Assembly: GCF_032191835.1 (NCBI RefSeq)
Contig: NC_083228.1
Coordinates: 91,388,001 to 91,452,000 of the forward strand
DNA length: 64,000 nucleotides
Direction: 5' to 3'
From: Heteronotia binoei
Lineage: Eukaryota
Numbering within the stretch: the stretch's first letter is position 1; the number at the start of each line of letters is the position of its first letter. Positions 29,657-64,000 of the stretch are shown here, piece by piece. A program made the position numbers and the translations under genes. The notes under the pieces were generated by a model. It was given only the letters and a program-made list of their open reading frames with translations. It ran no database searches and was not told the origin of the DNA.

Positions 29657-30623
29657 CAGGGCCAGCTCGCCTGCTAGGCAAACTAGGCAATTGCCTAGGG
29701 CATCAGGAAGGTGGGAGCGCCAAATTGGGCTCTCCACCCTTCCCGCACTCAAGGCAAATGCCTAGTTTACCTGCCGCTACGCCACTGCCACCTCCACCCT
29801 CCTCTGGTATCCTCCTCCTCTGTGGCCATGAGCTCCGCCACCAAACCTCCCCCCCACCACCCCGCGCGCTCTCAAAGACACGCTAGAATCGGCCCTACCC
29901 TCTTAAACATGGCTTGGGCCTCTCAGCGGTGAATGAGGCTTCGCTCAGGAGTGAAGGCAAGGAGGACCAAAGGAGGGAGGGAGGAACGAAGCCTGCACCA
30001 CATTTAAGCAGGTAGGGCTGATTCTAGCGGTGCTACTTTGAAGGGGAGGGGGAGAGAGGAGGAGCGCCGCTAGAATTGGCCCTACCCGCTTAAACATGGC
30101 CGGGCTTCTCAGCGCTGAAAGCCGCATTCAGCGCTGAGAGGCCCAAGCCACATTTAAGCAGGTAAGGCCAATTCTAGCAGCGCTGCTCCTCCCTTCCCCT
30201 TCTACGGCGGCCCCTCCGCTGCCCACCCACCCCCCTCGGCAAGCTAAAAATAACACTGCTAGAATCGGCCCTACCTGCTTAAACACGGCCCAGGCCTCTC
30301 ATTGCTGAACAAGGCTTCGCTCCAGAGGGAAGCCTTGTTCAGCGATGAGAGGCCTAGGTCATGTTTAAGCAGGTCGGGCAGTTTCTAGGCGCTACTTTGA
30401 GCATGCTGAGGGAGGACGGGTGGCGGAACACACCACAGCGGAAGGGAAGGGAGGGGGCGGTAGTGTTTCCCAGGAAAGGGGAGGGAGGGGGGCTTTAAAA
30501 TGCCCGGGAAGTGCGGTGCTCCACTGCCCCTTCCCAGGCATTATAATGGTGGGGAGCAAGTCTGCCCGCAGAGGGGGGGCGATGAGTCTTCCTGGAGCGC
30601 TATGCACCCCAGGGCTGGCCCAG
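29657..30623. mobile_element. hAT non-autonomous element (967 bp) containing three long hairpin units
   Basis: Termini cagggccagc / gctggcccag and perfect 8-bp TSD ggcatgta (29649-29656, 30624-30631). Internal palindromic units lie at 29881-30029, 30069-30178 and 30258-30388. Confidence 0.9.
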
Positions 30624-34417: not shown

Positions 34418-34921
34418 GGGAGGGGCTGTGGCTCAGTGGTAGACCATCTGCTTGACATGCAAGAAGTTCCCAAGTTTAATTCCCTGGCATCTCCAGTTGA
34501 AAGGATCCAATAGGAGGTGATGTGAAAAACTGCCTGAAACCATGAAGAGCCACTACCAGTCTGGGTAGACAATACTGACAATTTGATGGATTCAGTATAA
34601 AGCAGTTTCTTGTGTGTTCATGAGTTGAATTCAGTCAGCAACTTTGTCTTCCTTCCTTCCTTCCTTCCTTCCTTCCTTCCTTCCTTCCTTCCTTCCTTCC
34701 TTCCTTCCTGGAGGGTTGTCGTTAGTGGCAGAGCATCTGCTTTGCATACTGACAGTTTAAGGTTCAGTCCTTGGCATGTCCAGATAAAATGACCAAGAAG
34801 GAGGTGATGAGAAAGGTCTCTGCCTGAGACCCTGGAAAGGTATAGCCGGTATGAGCAAACAATATTAACACTGAAGGACTGAGGGTCTGATTCAGTATAA
34901 AGCAGCTTCATGTGCTCATGT
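34418..34921 (+). mobile_element. Two tandem tRNA-derived SINEs (Squam2-like; 34418-34621, 34710-34921) separated by (TTCC)n
   Basis: gggaggggctgtggctcagtggtag head and gattcagtataaagcag tail; the (TTCC)n run is at about 34648-34709. Confidence 0.8.
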
Positions 34922-51391: not shown

Positions 51392-51607
51392 GGGGAGGGA
51401 CGGTGGCTCAGTGGTAGAGCATCTGCTTGGGAAGCAGAAGGTCCCAGGTTCAATCCCTGGCATCTCCAAAAAAAAGGGTCCAGGCAAATAGGTGTGAAAA
51501 GCCTCAGCTTGAGACCCTGGAGAGCCGCTGCCAGTCTGAGAAGACAATACTGACTTTGATGGACCAAAGGTCTGATTCAGTATAAGGCAGCTTCATATGT
51601 TCATATG
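51392..51607 (+). mobile_element. tRNA-derived SINE (Squam2-like), well preserved
   Basis: A-box tggctcagtgg, B-box ggttcaatccc and tail (catatgtt)2. Confidence 0.88.
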
Positions 51608-51895
51608 TTTAATTCTAAGAATGTTTAGTGAGAAGTTTTACTATAGTTAACCATGTAAGTTAAATTAGTGATTACTGTTACTTTAGAATAGAGCATTTGA
51701 TTATGTAACCATCTATCTTATTAACAACACAAAACAAATTTAAAAACTGATGAATTAACAAAATATTTCAGATTTTTAATTGTTATCACTAAAGACATGT
51801 CCTGATGTGTCACTATGGGTTATTTTTTGTAAATGTCTGTGAATGCTTACAAATTAGTTTTGAAGAAATCCACTGTGGAAGTCTTTCACAAGCGG

Positions 51896-51907
51896 CAAGA
51901 TGGCGGC
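51896..51907 (+). promoter_or_regulatory. YY1 consensus site
   Basis: CAAGATGGCGGC, an exact YY1 consensus, at the start of the CpG-rich segment. Confidence 0.6.
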
Positions 51908-52349
51908 AAGGCAGGAGCTCAGGTGCTAGAGCTCCTGGAAAATCCTGATAAAAAACCAAAAACCAGGGAGCCTTACCTGCCCACCTGTCACCCTAGCTCG
52001 GTGGAGACGGTCAGAGAACCAGCCTGGCCGTTTTTTGCCCTGGAAAAGGAGGTGAGCCGTTGGAGGGCCGGCAGAGTGCTGTTTGAGACGAGCCGGTGAG
52101 GGTGTGGCCTGCTGCTACCGTGGAGATGGCTGAGACGGCGGGGTGTAGTGAGAGGCGACCGGCCGAACGACGAGCAGGGCCGGTATCGCCGGATGGAATG
52201 TGCGGAGTGAGGCCGCTGAACCAGCGGTGAGCGGAGCCAACGTGAGGTCCGGGACGCCTGCAGGGCGTGGGGCCAGCAGGCAGAGCTAGGGTGACCATAA
52301 TGTCTGAAGGCCAGCCAGGGACACTGGGGGGGGGGGTGTGCCGGAAACA

Positions 52350-52384
52350 GGAAGTGACGTCACTTCCGGTGACGTCACTTCCGG
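52350..52384 (-). promoter_or_regulatory. Tandem ETS-CRE composite motifs
   Basis: Two exact adjacent copies of CCGGAAGTGACGTCA on the minus strand (52355-52369, 52370-52384). GGAAGTGACGTCACTTCC (52350-52367) is itself palindromic. Confidence 0.55.
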
Positions 52385-52984
52385 TGATGTCATGCCACCA
52401 CCGGAAACAGGAAGTGGCATCACTTCCTGTGACATCATTTCCCCCGCGTCACCTGCCGGAAACAGGAAGTGACTTCACAGCACTTCCTGTGACGTCCCCA
52501 AAAATCCCCCAAATATCACCGCCGGAAACAATTTTGTTCTCAAATCCTGTATATACTTCATCAGTATATGGGATAAGGCACTTTCTCAACTGTGCTGCAT
52601 AATGCAGCCTATTTATTTTGTCCTGTTGGCTCTGTTGGCTCTATCTGCGCCACCTTCATCACTTTCGGGGTGTGGATCCCCCAGTGGGGTGGTCTCCCAA
52701 CTCCCTCCGCTGACTGTTTCTGATAGCCCTGCGCCCCCTCTTTCATTTGATATGTGTCCCGTGCGGGTGCCACCCTCCCGCCGGGAGATGCCGCAAAATG
52801 ATCCCCCTTGAGGCTTATGGCGGCAGGGCTCGGGGGAAGCGAGCTAGACTGCTGTTCTTTTGAGGGGTTATAGAGTGTTTCGAGCCCGTCCCTGTGGCAT
52901 CGGTCCCATCGTTGTGGGACCCAGGGGGCCGGCGCAGTGGCACGCCGAAGCAGCCTGTCACTAATAACACCGGTCAAGATGCAG

Positions 52985-53316
52985 GCCTTCGCTGGCCGGC
53001 GCTGGTCCCGGAAGGCCTTCCAGAGGCTCTGGAAGGCCTTCCGGGACCAGCGCCGGGTGCCCCGCGGCCTCCCCGCGGCCTCCGCTGGTCCCTGGAGGCC
53101 CTCCAGAGACTCTGGAGGGCCTCCAGGGACCAGCGGAGGCCGCGGGGAAGCCTTCGCTGGCTGGCGCTGGTCCCCGAAGGCCTTCCAGAGGCTCTGGAAG
53201 GCCTTCCGGGACCAGTGCCGGGTGCCCCGCGGCCTCTCCGCGGCCTCCGCTGGTCGCTGGAGGCCCTCCAGAGTCTCTGGAGGGCTTCCAGCGACCAGCG
53301 GAGGCCACGGAGAGGC
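52985..53316. repeat. 2 x 165-bp tandem repeat, each unit made of two long palindromes
   Basis: Perfect hairpins at 52996-53056 (30-bp arms, 1-nt loop) and 53070-53148 (39-bp arms, 1-nt loop); near-perfect copies in unit 2 starting at 53150. Confidence 0.95.
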
Positions 53317-54079
53317 CTCCACTACTGCCGCCGGGCCCCGCGCGCGGGCGGGGAAGGCGGGGAGTGAGGGAGGGAGCGGCCCTGCATGGGGGAAGCCCGG
53401 GGGCGATCGCGGATAGGGCCGGGGGTGCCGCTGCCACCGGGGGCAGCTGTAAATGGACTGGCCTCTCCGCGGGGAGAGCACCGGGGCTTCACAGCACGGC
53501 GGGAACACGAGGGGGGTCTCTACCCCCCCCCCCCGGGCTCACCAGGCCGTGCAGAAGACATTAGACCTGCACCCAACACGACGATTGCTACTCGGTGCAC
53601 CTACTTTGCTCCTACTCGCACTTCATCACTTTATCACTGGGCACTTTATCACACTCTGTTTACTATCTGCTTACCACTGCCTACTACCGCATACTACATC
53701 ATACTACTTCGACCAGGAAGAACTCACATTGCACTTTAGTAACGTTCTACCTCACTCACAGACTACTAGTTTAAAAAAAATTGATTTGGGAATTAGCTCA
53801 TTTGTTTAATTTATTAGATATTTATTATATGTATTGGATCTGAACTTATGAATTTTACTGGCTAATTAAATTGAGGATAATTTTATGGGGTGGGATTTAT
53901 AATTAATTTTAGCCATCAGACTTAAATTATGTATCTGACCAATCATATATAAAGGAACTGGGGGGTAGGTTTATTGGGTTAATTCGGAAATTGGGATCTC
54001 GTAGGATGGTGTGATTTGGAGAGCGTTGTGACTACTGTACATCAGTGTTGGCTAGGACAGCAGGAACCACCAGTGGGGA

Positions 54080-57050
54080 ATGGCTGGTCTAGGGATCCCA
54101 GTGCTCCTGGGGAGGGGGAGGTATGGCGGTGGGAGCAGACGATATAAGGGCGGGAGACCGAGACAGGTTAGTGCTCGCTCACCCTCCAATCTGTGTCCCA
54201 TCCCAATGGTGACAGGGAGTAGGGCCAGGAAAAATAACCCGCCTCCGTCATTGGTGTTATGCAACGCCAGGTCCATTAACAACAAGACTTCTGTCCTTCG
54301 AGAGTTCCTAATCAAACAGGACATGGACCTGGCATGCGTGACCGAAACCTGGGTCTGAGAGGGAGATACAATAGCCCTCTCGCAAACAGCTCCGCCGGGT
54401 TATTCGGTCTTTCACCAATCGCGGACTAGCAGGCGGGGGGGAGGAGTGGCATTATTTATACATGAGGCTTACTCCTTCAGGGCACTCCCGGCCCCAAGGA
54501 TCGAAGGCATTGAATGTGCTGGCTTGGCACTGGAGGCTGGAGAGGGATTGGCGATCTGGCTGGTATACCGTATGCCTAACGCACCAGCCGGCGCCTTACC
54601 GTCCCTACTCGAGGCGGAGACAGGCTGGGTGCTGGAGCACCCAAGGCTGGTGATCCTGGGTGACTTCAACGTCCATGCTGATGACCCGGCCTCTAGTCAG
54701 GCGACGGTCCTGGTGTCATCCATGGCAACACTAGGACTCTCTCAGTTTGTTGCAGCCCCCACTCACCAGGCCGGTCACATGTTAGATCTGGTCTTTGCGG
54801 CCAGGGTTACGGTGGACGATATAACCACCGAAGTGGTGCCATGGTCGGACCACCTCGCCCTTAGGGCTCGTATAGATATGCCACCCCAAACCTGTTTAGG
54901 TGACGAGCCCATTATGGCTCGCCCGCGGAGCCAGATGGACCCTAAACGGTTCCAATCGGCCCTGCGGGATCCCTGGCCCTCTGGCGATTCCCTCAATGGC
55001 CTGGTTGAGACATGGAACGCTCAACTATCTAGGGCCATTGACGAGATCGCACCTTGACGCCCTCTACAGCCTCGGAGTAGGCTGGCTCCGTGGTACACCC
55101 CGGAGCTGCGTCAGCTGAAACAGGTCTCAGACGGCTAGAGAGGCAATGGCGACGCACCCGTGACGAAGTGACTAGATCAGCTTATAGGGCGTTTATGAGG
55201 TCCTATGAGATGGCAATCAAGGCTGCAAAGAAAACTTTCTTTGTGACCAAGATTGTGTCTGCAAATTCACGCCCGGCACAATTGTTTAGGATAATTCGGA
55301 ATTTCACTACATTGCCACAAGGCAAGTCAAATGTTAAGGAATTGGAAATAGGCTGTGAGGCTTTTGCGAAATTTTTTGCAGACAAGGTCCAATCACTCCG
55401 CCATGACTGTCCGGCCATATTAGATACAGTGAGCGAACTCGAGGCTCCGTGCGTGTCTTCTAATTCGAACCTGGACTGTTTTGACCCACTCAGCTTGGAG
55501 GAGGTGGACAGAATCCTTGTAACTGCACGCCCTACTACATGCGATCTGCACCCATGCCCCTCCTGGTTAATTAAGGCCTGCCGGGAGGAGTTAAGATGTC
55601 CTATTCGGGACATCATAAATAGATCTCTTTCAGAGGGCTATTTCCCATTGCTCCTGAAGGAGGCAGTGGTCTGCCCTCTCCTGAAAAAGGTTACATCGGA
55701 CCCGGCCGAATTGGCTCATTACCGGCTGGTCTCAAATTTGCCCTTTTGGGGCAAAATTATCGAGAGGGCTGTGGCGTTGCAGTTGCAGAGTTTTCTGGAT
55801 GACACTTCCACCTTGGATCCATATCAGTCCGGCTTCCGCCTGGGCCATGGGGTGGAGACGGTGTTGGTCGCCCTCATGGATGACCTCCGGCGACATCTGG
55901 ATCGAGGCGGCTCGGCGGTATTACTGTTGCTAGACCTATCGGCTGCGTTCGATATGGTCGACCATCAGCTGCTGACCCGCCGCCTCGCCGACGCAGGAAT
56001 TCGGGGGCTAGCCTTACAGTGGCTCTCCTCCTTCCTTGAAGGTCAGGGACAAAGGGTGGCGGTTGGAGGAGAGATGTCCCGGAGACACCTACTTAGCTGT
56101 GGGGTGCCCCAGGGGGCAGTTCTCTCCCCAATGTTGTTTAATATCTTTATGCGCCCCCTTCCCCAGATTGCCCGGAGACATGGGCTGGGATGGCATCAGT
56201 ACGCTGATGACACTCAGCTCTATCTATTGATGGGCGACTGGACCGCCGACACCCCTATAAATTTGGACCAGGCATTACAGGCCGTGGCAGACTGGATCAG
56301 GCTGAGTGGGCTGAAGCTGAACCCAGCAAAGACAGAGGTCCTTTGCGTGGATCGCTGCGGGCTGGGAGGGGAGATCCCCCTACTGGCCTTTGACGGTGCG
56401 TCGCTGATACCAGTGCGCAGGGTCAAGAGCCTAGGAGTGCTACTGGAGCCCTCCCAGACAATGGAGGCACAGATAGCAGCCACTGCTAAATCTGCCTTCT
56501 TCCATCTTAGAAGAGCGAGACAGTTGGCCCCCTTCCTAGAACGTAGCGACCTAGCAACAGTGATCCATGCAACGGTCACCTCGAGATTAGACTACTGTAA
56601 TGCCCTCTACATGGGGCTGCCCCTGTGCCAAACTCGGAAGTTGCAGCTAGTGCAGAATGCGGCGGCCAGGCTGCTACTGGGACTACCTCGGTGGGAACAC
56701 GTGCGGCCTGGGCTGAAGAAACTGCACTGGCTTCCAATTATATTCCGAGTTCGCTACAAGGTGCTGGTCATTACCTATAAAGCCCTATATGGCCGAGGAC
56801 CTGCCTACCTTAGGGACCGCCTCTCTCCACATGTTCCCCAGAGAGCACTAAGTCTAGCTCCCAAAATCTTTTAAGGATCCCTGGACCAAAGGAGGCCACA
56901 CTGAAAGTAACGAGGGAGCAGGCCTTCTCTATAATGGCCCCCCACTGGTGGAATTAACTACTGGAGGAAGTGTGAGCCCTGCGGGACTTTAACCAGTTCT
57001 GCAGGGCTTGCAAAACCACCCTGTTTCTGCAAGCTTATAAGGAACCTTGA
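54080..57050 (+). pseudogene. L2 ORF2 (AP endonuclease plus reverse transcriptase), about 990 codons, disrupted
   Basis: LCNARSINNK, CVTETW, GDFN, SDH, LDLSAAFDMVDH, GVPQGAVLSP, QYADDTQLY, LDYCNA and LHWLP are all present. Stops at 54356, 55055, 56955 and 56973; 1-bp frameshifts near 55122 and 56852. Confidence 0.93.
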
Positions 57051-57586
57051 AAACGATATCTAGCCGCCGGAATATATCTATTGGAATAGCACCTAATCTA
57101 TTGTAGTTTTAAATTTTTATGTAACTGTTTTTAAAAGTATTTATTAACTGTATTTTAAATTGTTTTATATAAATCATGGCGTAGACCATGTCCTGTCAGC
57201 CGCCCTGAGCCTGCTTCGGCGGGGAGGGCGGGATACAAATAAAATTTATTATTATTTCATGTGCCCTGCATTTCCTTCTTGAGTTCTCTCCAATATTGCT
57301 AAGTTTTTTTTTTCAAAATAGGTGGTATTCAGTAATGAGAATAATACCTTGAATCTGGACAGCATTTTTTGTCTTCATCTCACCTCAACTCACATTTTCT
57401 ATTTAATAGGTTGGGACAAATTGAAGAATGCAAATTATATACAGGGCATTGACATCCCACTGTTTCTGAGATGAAATACTCCTGAAATTAGTGTTTTGCT
57501 GTATAAGATTAACTGAAATTTCATAGGAGGGAAACTATGATAAAGACCATAGGGAAGAGATTTATGTATATTTGATAAAATGTTAA

Positions 57587-58151: not shown

Positions 58152-60536
58152 TAGCTATATAGAAATTTGGGAACAATTTAAATCATTAAGCTAGAACAAT
58201 AAAACTGAAGTTGTGAACAAAAAAGATATAAAAAAGAGGGGTTCAGGTGGGTAGCTATGTTGGTCTGAAGCAGAGGGATAAAGTTTGAATCCCGTGGCAC
58301 CTTTAAGACCAACAAATTTTTATTCAAAATATAAGCCTTTGAGTGCAAGCACACTTCTTCAAATACAAAAAAATGGAATAGAATATCCTCAGGTCCTGCT
58401 TTCAGGAAAAGAGAGGATGGGAGGCAGCCATTAGGAAGGGCCACTCAGAGCTTAGATACATAAGCTGTGCTGAAATAGGATCTGGTGGCTGGTAAGTTGA
58501 TTTTAGTGTCTTTTTAACTGTTTGTTTCCTTTATTAAGCGGAAATAAAATATATTTAACATTATTTACTTATTTAATAGTAATATATAATTAATACATTA
58601 CTACAACTAACAATATTAATATAGACTCTAAAGAGAACACAAATTCCTGGCCCAGCCTTAAAAAAAAAAAAAAGTCTGCCACAGATAGCCAGGGATTTTC
58701 AGTGATGTGGTAGCTGAAGTGTAAAATGAGGACCATTTTAAAGTTAGGAGAGAGACAGAATTTGGATGGACAGATGTTCTCATATAAAGTCCTTTGTTCC
58801 AGAATATCACAGTCCCTTGGAACATTACTGATGGACATATAAACACAAAATTACCAAGCCATTATTTGGAAGACAGGTGAAACTACACAGCAGAACTTAC
58901 CATTAGAAACTCTTCTCTCAACTCTATTACATCTCTATTTGACTCCTGTATATGATAAGAGTGGTCACCTAAGCATCACTGTCTTCAAACTTGGTGCATG
59001 GTCATAATCACCCATTGAACAGGCCCAATCATTGAAACAGACAGCTATGATTAGTCACATTCAGATGTCCATCTACATATGGCAACAAATAAACAATACA
59101 GCCACTATGGATTAGGTCTGCCAAGCCCCCATCAGAAGTGGGTAATTTGCACCCCTGACTATTGTTTCCTGCTGTTCCCTGGAGAAGTGGCAGGATAAAA
59201 AAAAATTTAAATTGCCATCAGGTCAATGGCATTATGAAACTTTTAGGAATCCCTCTCTAGGAATTGCTAGAAACTCTGTGGCTTTACCCCCTCCTCCAAA
59301 TTACTTTCATGCTCTCACCAGTGGTGCCCCTCCATCTCCTGCAACCCTATTCTACTTTATGGTGGTTGAACCCCAACTGCCATGATCACCTGGAAAGAGG
59401 TAAGATCTCAAATGTGCCTCGGATAAATTGTAATCCTTTACTTTCTATTGCTCTACCCAACCAACAATGAAGATTTTAAACACCTGTTGACTTCAGTTGG
59501 AGGGTTAAGCATATGATTAAATCACTTCCACTGAAATCAATGCAGTTGCTAATTGATCTTGTCCTGCTTTTGGCTTTTAAAGTGCCCTGATCTGCTAAAA
59601 CCAGACAGTGAAGCTTTTCACAGCATGGAATTATCACTTGCTAACATCTTCTTCTCTGGCTGCTCTTAATGACTCAAGGAAAACAATGAAACTAAAGGCC
59701 AAACTAGACATGCATGTAACAGTTAATCCAAACTTAGATTTTGGTAAATGGAAACGTAATGTTTTAAATGTTTGGGTTTTTTGATGCTGTAGTTACAACA
59801 CTGGATAAAGAATTATGCTGCAATAAGACCCTAAACAACTGAATAACCAAAGTAAGCTATTTAAATGAAATTGTATGCAAAAGTGAATAATAATCAATTG
59901 ATATACAAGATACAAAATATAACAACAATCCAAATGCTCTAGGTAATTATAATTATGTGTGTACTGGGTTTTTCTCATGGTTTTCTAGACTAAATCCTTA
60001 GCTGATACAAATAAGAGTGTTTTATTTACCACCATCATTTGTTCAACACAAATGGTTATTAGAAAAACAGTATACATTAGAAACAGTTTTATTCTACAAA
60101 AAAGCCCAGCAGAAACTCATTTGCATATTAGGCCAAACACCCCTTACACCACCAGAAGTGATGTCACCCAGTCAGCAGGTTACTTTCCACATATTGACAC
60201 TGAACAGTACAGTGCCATCAGCTGCATTTCATGGATGCATGTTCTCACACAGCCCAATGAGAGACCTTGTTTTGCCCCCCCCCCCCCACAACATGTGCAG
60301 TGGAGCAGGCAGTGACAGGCACGCCTAGGAGGAAGTTCTTGTGGTTGGCTCTGCATCTCTCATTCTCTTCGCAAGCAGAGAGGACAGAGCACACAGCCTG
60401 GGTGTGTGTGACTGCCTAGTGCCTTCCCTCTGCTGGAGACCTTTTTTTTGAGCTGGAACCCTGGCCAAGCCAGATGGAACTGTGTTCCTGTGCATTCCTG
60501 CTTAAGAAACATCATGTCATAGCATGTCCTGCTTAC

Positions 60537-60770
60537 CTGTTTGTTTAAGAATATGTAGATGACTGGATTGTAGACTGTGCTGCTCTTTGCAAGGATGGAA
60601 GGAATGATACTGGCAGATGCAGAAATCAGACCAGGCTTCCCAAAAGTTGCTATCAGTGCCATAATCCCATAAGGTAGCCAGCACAGCAGAAAGCAAATGA
60701 CCATCACAACCACCATGATCAGGACACGATGCTCCCTTGTTTGTGTTACTCCTTTCTTTACTCCACTCAT
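60537..60770 (-). CDS. TMT-family non-visual opsin, penultimate exon (TM6-TM7)
   Basis: tatag|MSGVKKGVTQTREHRVLIMVVVMVICFLLCWLPYGIMALIATFGKPGLISASASIIPSILAKSSTVYNPVIYIFLNKQ|gtaagc; 234 nt. It has CWxP, the Schiff-base Lys (AKSS), NPxxY and the ciliary-opsin NKQ. Confidence 0.95.
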
Positions 60771-62543: not shown

Positions 62544-62690
62544 GGGGAGGGGCTCTCATTCAGTAGTATAGCATCTGCTTGGCATGCAGAAGGTCCCAGG
62601 TTCAACCCCTGGCATTTCCAGCTAAAAAAACAGAAACAAGTAGTAGGTGATGTGAAAGACCTCCACCTGAAATACTAGAGAGCCACTGCC
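62544..62690 (+). mobile_element. tRNA-derived SINE (Squam2-like), 3'-truncated
   Basis: gcatctgcttggcatgcagaaggtcccaggttcaacccctggcat, homologous to 51392-51607. Confidence 0.75.
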
Positions 62691-63717: not shown

Positions 63718-64000
63718 TTACCTCGGTGGGAACATGTGCGGCCTGGGCTGAAGGAACTGCACTGGCTTCCAATTATATTCCGAGTTCGCTACAAGGTGCT
63801 GGTCATTACCTTTAAAGCCCTATATGGCCGAGGACCTGCCTACCTTAGGGACCGCCTCTCTCCACATGTTCCCCAGAGAGCACTAAGATCTAGCTCCCAA
63901 AGCCTTTTAAGGATCCCTGGACCAAAGGAGGCCAAACTGAAAATAACAAGCCTTCTCTATAATGGCCCCCCACTGGTGGAATCAACTACCGGAGGAAGTG
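63718..64000 (+). mobile_element. 5'-truncated L2 copy of the same young family, running off the window
   Basis: Nearly identical by eye to 56685-56972. Confidence 0.93.

Follow-up and report, generated by a model that had tools for sequence, protein, structure and literature searches.

Tandem units upstream of an open reading frame are familiar from LINEs, whose leaders are known as mosaics that bear tandem monomers; those of mouse L1 (types A, Tf and Gf) are tandem promoter monomers in the 5' UTR. L2 elements are often found without target-site duplications. Long palindromes have been described from the ampliconic regions of the human Y chromosome, where structures of 10^4-10^6 bp, with spacers between their arms, undergo recombinational arm-to-arm gene conversion. 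At the scale of single hairpins, template switching creates perfect stems and one-step compensatory changes (PMC8794818) and extends identity in quasi-palindromes (PMC3820800). Stepwise compensatory evolution of an RNA stem is expected to proceed mainly through G-U pairs (PMC8794818). The published cases of template-switch mutation concern one stem at a time, in an RNA gene or a reporter construct (PMC8794818, PMC3820800). Satellite DNAs with dyad symmetry have been surveyed as long centromeric arrays whose dyads are shorter than 10 bp (PMC5889037), and the satellite DNAs of oysters are scattered together with transposons (PMC8268682).

Here we describe an array of palindromes from the gecko Heteronotia binoei. 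It lies in a window of 64,000 nucleotides (assembly GCF_032191835.1, contig NC_083228.1, positions 91,388,001 to 91,452,000 of the forward strand), and all coordinates below count from the first letter of that window (Table 1). We regard the array as probably a dispersed palindromic minisatellite whose symmetry would be renewed by template-switch copying, present at this locus as a decaying two-unit copy within an abundant repeat block beside an L2 element.

Table 1. Features of the array and its surroundings, with depth in three of the public runs.
Feature	Coordinates	Strand	Description or evidence	Depth, X1 (DNA)	Depth, X4 (DNA)	Depth, X2 (RNA contigs)
Monomers of about 60 bp, three	52339-52528	.	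18-nt perfect palindrome in each; multi-copy; in RNA libraries			
Flanking repeat, very abundant, 457 bp	52529-52985	.	depth; loose ends at 52529 and 52985 in X1, X4 and X16	63-111	134-786	
Array as a whole				9-28	17-72	10-22
Unit 1	52985-53149	.	165 bp; palindromes A1 and B1			
Palindrome A1	52996-53056	.	centre 53026; arms 30/30; nested 12-nt palindrome in each arm			
Palindrome B1	53066-53152	.	centre 53109; nested 15-nt palindrome in each arm			
Unit 2	53150-53314	.	165 bp; palindromes A2 and B2			
Palindrome A2	53161-53221	.	centre 53191; arms 27/30; unmirrored mismatches 53162, 53175, 53216			
Palindrome B2	53231-53317	.	centre 53274; arms 41/43; unmirrored mismatches 53286, 53307			
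Third unit, truncated start	53315-53340	.	blastn			
GC-rich tail of the repeated block	53317-53475	.	loose ends at 53314, 53333, 53349, 53377			
Broken L2-clade LINE	54031-57256	+	Pfam, squamate L2 proteins and read depth; downstream neighbour of the array			
5' part of L2 ORF2				0-4	0-7	

The array consists of two head-to-tail units of 165 nt at 93 per cent identity (repeat search; TRF score 591), with eleven differences between them. About 26 nt of a third unit follow the second (blastn of 53150-53340 against 52985-53176, 90.6 per cent), giving 2.15 units in total. A sub-period of 83 bp (3.6 copies, 74 per cent matches) runs inside the 165-bp period and indicates that palindromes A and B are homologous. 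Repeat tools therefore recovered both the A-B-A-B order with its 165-bp period and the homology of A and B, each of which the initial annotation of this locus had claimed. Head-to-tail tandem units and self-complementary units, two of the features that mark a dyad-symmetric minisatellite, are both observed directly.

We compared the arms position by position, counting arm position (k) outward from the palindrome centre. Each of the four palindromes turns on a single central base (G in A1, A in B1, G in A2, T in B2). Perfect arms around a 1-nt loop had been reported for the first A and the first B, and this description holds for A1 and for B1, whose arms match at 39/39 positions over 53070-53148 and at 42/43 over the full span 53066-53152. 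In the second unit, A2 has three mismatches (k = 16, 25 and 29) and B2 has two (k = 12 and 33). The nested palindromes noted within the arms were also found: the A arm contains a perfect one of 12 nt and the B arm a perfect one of 15 nt, with its centre shifted by half a base. Eight matches to the arm motif were observed where shuffles gave an expectation of zero, and the array folds as single-stranded DNA at -205 kcal/mol (z = -25.9). Together the motif count and the fold exclude a chance origin of the palindromes.

The region 51700-55000 was compared with four public runs that carry three related organism labels: contigs from DNA (two labels), contigs from RNA (the third label), and raw RNA reads (the same third label). 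Read depth was limited to approximately 52340-53475 and appeared again from about 54000. All four runs, RNA included, lacked any depth over 52033-52254 and 53476-53919. Independent contigs, from DNA of two other organism labels, span 53034-53126, 53166-53277 and 53066-53135; the second of these runs from A2 through the centre of B2, and others cross B1 through its centre. RNA contigs and reads of the third label cover the array as well, and palindrome contigs from other samples lie above single-copy depth. From these independent contigs we conclude that the palindromes are real and multi-copy in related animals, the latter a direct observation, and the array probably belongs to a repeat family scattered in the gecko genome. 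Palindromes are error-prone in assembly, and a fold-back chimera or a mis-collapsed repeat might produce an array of this kind. That the array is such an artefact is extremely unlikely, however, given that short-read contigs assembled independently from other samples hold A whole and B through its centre.

Both in this gecko and in related animals, the palindrome family is joined to a larger, abundant repeat block (52340-53475). Exactly at 52985, where the first unit starts, other sequence continues in one contig from each of two DNA runs and in ten raw RNA reads. Since most copies of the abundant repeat diverge at this point, the array is a minority module joined to that repeat. The divergent sequence past 52985 ends in the reverse complement of 52950-52959, which matches a second loose end at 52959. 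These loose ends suggest that the flanking repeat may, in most of its copies, form a long inverted repeat around a loop of about 46 nt. Many copies of 52529-52985 carry different sequence upstream of 52529, and the tail at 53317-53475 is joined to different sequences in other samples. In the RNA contigs, depth over the stretch peaks on the monomers at 52339-52528 (up to 4,846), and their 18-nt palindrome is presumably a composite ETS/CRE-type site, a promoter motif. Across 51950-53600 the GC content is 0.55-0.77 and the observed/expected ratio of CpG is 0.4-0.9. A YY1-type motif (51885-51905) stands at the start of this CpG-rich stretch, and faint RNA depth was seen over 51811-52032. There could be a weak transcription start at the YY1-type motif, unrelated to the multi-copy block.

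Between A and B, five arm positions differ within 30 nt (k = 8, 14, 16, 27 and 28), and all five differences are mirrored on the opposite arm. The initial annotation had likewise described every A/B difference as mirrored, though its count of three covered the core only. Two further mirrored changes that it listed between the B copies are confirmed at k = 18 (C:G to G:C) and k = 37 (C:G to T:A). There are seven mirrored doubles to five unmirrored singles, and transversion pairs account for four of the seven doubles (k = 16, 18, 27 and 28). When the four palindromes are aligned without gaps, both members change in 6 of 30 pairs, compared with 0-1 when the partner column is slid by 1-3 positions; such covariation statistics had been suggested as a check. 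Standard pairs (with G-U counted) make up 99.2 per cent of the alignment cells, as opposed to 35-56 per cent when the partner column is slid by 1-3. Under independent substitution, the probability of at least two mirrored complementary doubles between B1 and B2 is 0.002, and the five A/B doubles were reproduced in none of 2,000,000 trials. These figures bear out the earlier judgement that the covarying pairs are improbable by independent mutation. The mirroring is observably non-random; independent point mutation is ruled out, and some symmetrising process acted on the palindromes.

The differences that had gone unreported are those at 53162, 53175, 53216, 53286 and 53307, none of them mirrored, together with one change at k = 40. 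All five unmirrored changes fall within unit 2, where four are transitions, three at CpG. At 53216, contigs of two other runs (DNA X1 and RNA X2) read the pairing base C. Because the unmirrored changes of unit 2 are mostly CpG transitions, the present copy appears to be decaying in the ordinary way. The mirroring would date from the earlier history of the palindrome family.

The nested palindromes link several of the mirrored changes. The three core differences between A and B are exactly those that turn the 12-nt nested palindrome into the 15-nt one. In an exhaustive enumeration, framed only after the pattern had been seen, the A core gains a new-register palindrome of at least 15 nt with 8 of 62,100 triple substitutions, and 56 of 62,100 triples in the reverse direction yield one of at least 12 nt. 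A coordinated switch of this kind would be the typical trace of a template switch on a misaligned fold-back, with the result then copied to the other arm. Clustered changes that jointly make or restore a perfect inverted repeat, by which template switching is recognised, are present here as the nested switch and the seven doubles.

In the history that we propose, the basic unit would have been a GC-rich palindrome of about 83 bp, which would have split into types A and B and now forms the 165-bp A-B higher-order unit. Such a palindrome may fold back during replication or repair, so that the nascent strand briefly takes either its own or the opposite arm as template. This template switch (quasi-palindrome correction) would carry a change over to the partner arm, or would in one step create a fresh, perfect nested palindrome. 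Variant units would then spread, and change in number, through unequal exchange or slippage. We infer the template-switch mechanism and the order of events from the four palindromes of this single locus; that each change ran in a given direction and arose in one event is likewise a proposal based on these four.

The initial annotation had ascribed the symmetry either to conversion within each palindrome or to selection on a cruciform or hairpin. Its premise of a symmetrising process stands, and of its two candidates intra-palindrome conversion fits better than hairpin selection. Mirrored changes as such would also follow if a hairpin or a symmetric protein site were under selection. The symmetry reaches k = 1 at a 1-nt centre, however, and the innermost pairs are unable to form in a hairpin, so stem stability is not their cause. 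The transversion pairs lack a wobble (G-U) intermediate, which favours copying over stepwise selection on a stem, and the interdependence of the three core A/B differences favours copying at the level of DNA.

A role for the palindromes as functional hairpins or cruciforms under selection, whether as small-RNA or miRNA-like precursors or as a structural signal of the carrier element, is rather unlikely. The strong covariation of the arms and the very stable fold are what such a role would leave, and RNA libraries contain the array at low depth. Of the four single transitions, three leave a G-T pair on the forward strand, tolerable in a stem of forward-strand RNA, though the sample is too small to weigh. 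Many Rfam models of miRNA precursors also match the array weakly. In E-value mode these matches are generic and fall on both strands, the best scoring 73.9 bits against a gathering score of 197 and 56.3 against 74. Any long perfect hairpin gives such matches, and at gathering thresholds Rfam places no named RNA family in the array. Selection on stems would not be expected to extend symmetry to the 1-nt centre or to produce transversion pairs, and unpaired changes have accumulated in unit 2. Compared with the flanking repeat, the array has 5-10 times less RNA depth, with first mates of the raw-read run approximately equal on both strands (the contig runs hold no strand information). Symmetric protein-binding sites, in an enhancer- or insulator-like module borne by the repeat, might instead owe their palindromy to dimeric factors. 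The A arms contain CCGGAAG in both orientations, which we take to be an ETS-type core on an unscored motif reading; the neighbouring monomers have palindromes of presumed ETS/CRE type, and CpG observed/expected is 0.57-0.77 across the array. This reading is nonetheless very unlikely: the motif identities are tentative, the ETS core is lost in the B arms, and binding sites need no unbroken symmetry of 30-43 nt.

Other alternatives concern mobile elements. The array had been suggested to be a recurrent module of non-autonomous (hAT) transposons, and this suggestion is not supported: no terminal inverted repeats with a target-site duplication were found around either the single palindromes or the whole block. 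The terminal inverted repeats and 8-bp target-site duplication of a MITE or non-autonomous hAT element are accordingly missing here. The sole flanking inverted pair (52298-52337 and 53522-53563) is 42 nt long at 74 per cent, has 8-nt flanks that differ, is made up largely of a G12 run and a C13 run, and lies outside the part common to other copies. The claim that the same design recurs at 29881-30388 survives in part. Three spaced palindromic units are indeed present there, in an element earlier read as a hAT MITE (about 110-150 bp each, at a spacing of 187-189 bp), but their arms are only 80-88 per cent complementary and their sequence is unrelated to that of the array. The array resembles them loosely, in design only. 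It is quite unlikely that an undescribed gecko element has the 165-bp A-B array as its mobile or functional core, uses the hairpins and keeps them perfect by template switching. Such an element would possibly be of a fold-back type, given that the flanking repeat seems in most copies to make up a long inverted repeat, and its hairpins might possibly be used as, for example, a source of small RNAs or a replication or transposition signal. Capture of the array into an L2 leader, also suggested earlier, is not supported, given the depth of zero over 53476-53919 in four of four runs, although both sides of that gap are repeated. This gap and the AT-rich segment within it argue that the array is a neighbour of the L2 and does not look like part of the leader of its common or expressed copies. 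The separation itself is directly observed; the contiguity with ORF2 in copies or transcripts that marks an L2 5' leader is lacking. A narrower version, in which the GC-rich sequence 51833-54030 with the array inside it is a rare chimeric 5' leader of this one L2 copy, is unlikely. That sequence stands upstream of a complete ORF2, is CpG-rich, bears promoter-like motifs (YY1-like near 51895 and the ETS/CRE-like monomers of 52339-52528), and would suit the mosaic, monomer-bearing leaders of other LINEs. The runs with zero depth over 52033-52254 and 53476-53919 leave common or expressed L2 copies without such a leader, however. An AT-rich block (53760-53950) lies between array and ORF2, and the L2 3' end shares no target-site duplication with the candidate 5' ends (no direct repeat of at least 8 nt between 57225-57320 and those ends). 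The latter is weak evidence, because L2 elements often lack such duplications.

The L2 itself has an endonuclease (APE) domain at 54080-55057 and a reverse transcriptase domain at 55090-56874 (Pfam), with its 3' end at about 57256. Among proteins it is closest to the L2 elements of squamates (65 per cent identity for Podarcis). The N-termini of these relatives place the start of ORF2 at about 54040-54110, and reads appear again from near 54031. The same L2 family is represented a second time at 63719-64000, by a fragment 93.8 per cent identical to 56684-56972, which indicates a fairly young family. We found no evidence for an effect of the array on the neighbouring L2 or on any gene.

Pfam gave no match in the four open reading frames that cross the array, which we therefore regard as a by-product of its GC-rich symmetry. 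Word-based protein searches with an array-crossing frame and with part of a flanking-repeat frame found no relatives. An exhaustive protein search with a frame of 299 aa gave four weak matches to long proteins (best E = 1e-07, over several short stretches), which were taken as compositional. The central 27-mer and a 24-nt arm pattern were absent from the metagenome contigs and viral contigs searched. A host promoter role was also rejected, as the nearest coding signal is a 7TM fragment whose 3' end faces the array across about 7 kb. That signal is an open reading frame on the minus strand at 60360-60770 that matches the last part of the rhodopsin-family 7TM profile (PF00001, E = 1.3e-11) and represents a receptor gene or a fragment of one. 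Upstream of the array, a tRNA-Pro-like sequence at 51396-51468 (Rfam 56.9 bits; ARAGORN anticodon GGG) is followed by an A-run and is probably the head of a tRNA-derived SINE. Weaker tRNA-like matches occur at 34422-34495 and 62549-62620. Functional hairpins, protein-binding sites and an L2 leader are unlikely readings without positive support, and the evidence found contains no pointer to a function or to the neighbouring L2.

If the reading of the array as a minisatellite renewed by template switching is true, the family offers a compact, naturally formed record of vertebrate template-switch mutagenesis, and all of its genomic copies could give the rate of template switching relative to point mutation. 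It would also be a caution that perfect 'compensatory' covariation in a hairpin is by itself no proof of a selected RNA or DNA structure.

Among known systems, the miRNA precursors of Rfam share with the gecko array a long stable hairpin of 60-90 nt, whereas the array scores below the gathering thresholds and is matched alike on both strands. The monomers of mouse L1 are similar in being GC-rich, arranged in tandem and placed upstream of a LINE ORF on its own strand. The array differs in that it is not contiguous with the L2 in reads, with about 0.5 kb of zero depth and an AT-rich block between them. Like the palindromes of the human Y chromosome, those of the gecko would have arms kept identical by copying and not by selection on each base, but they measure 61-87 bp and have no spacer.

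Further likenesses are to template-switch or quasi-palindrome mutations (Ripley model), in which changes extend or restore the arm complementarity of an imperfect inverted repeat, several bases change in one event and 'compensatory' pairs arise in one step (PMC8794818, PMC3820800). Unlike the published cases, the gecko array has footprints at two nested levels, between the arms and inside a single arm, and is a tandem, apparently dispersed and apparently non-coding minisatellite. It shares with dyad-symmetry satellites (PMC5889037) tandem units with dyads able to form non-B DNA, but its arms of 30-43 nt fill nearly the whole unit, and gecko arrays appear to be short (about 2-5 units) and dispersed. 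Short arrays of one repeat at many loci, joined to other repeats, are known from the oyster satellite DNAs (PMC8268682); the gecko family would share this pattern, but no transposon ends or target-site duplication were found for it. The kind is already known, from dyad-symmetric tandem repeats and quasi-palindrome correction, and the gecko family is a new and rather clean example of it.
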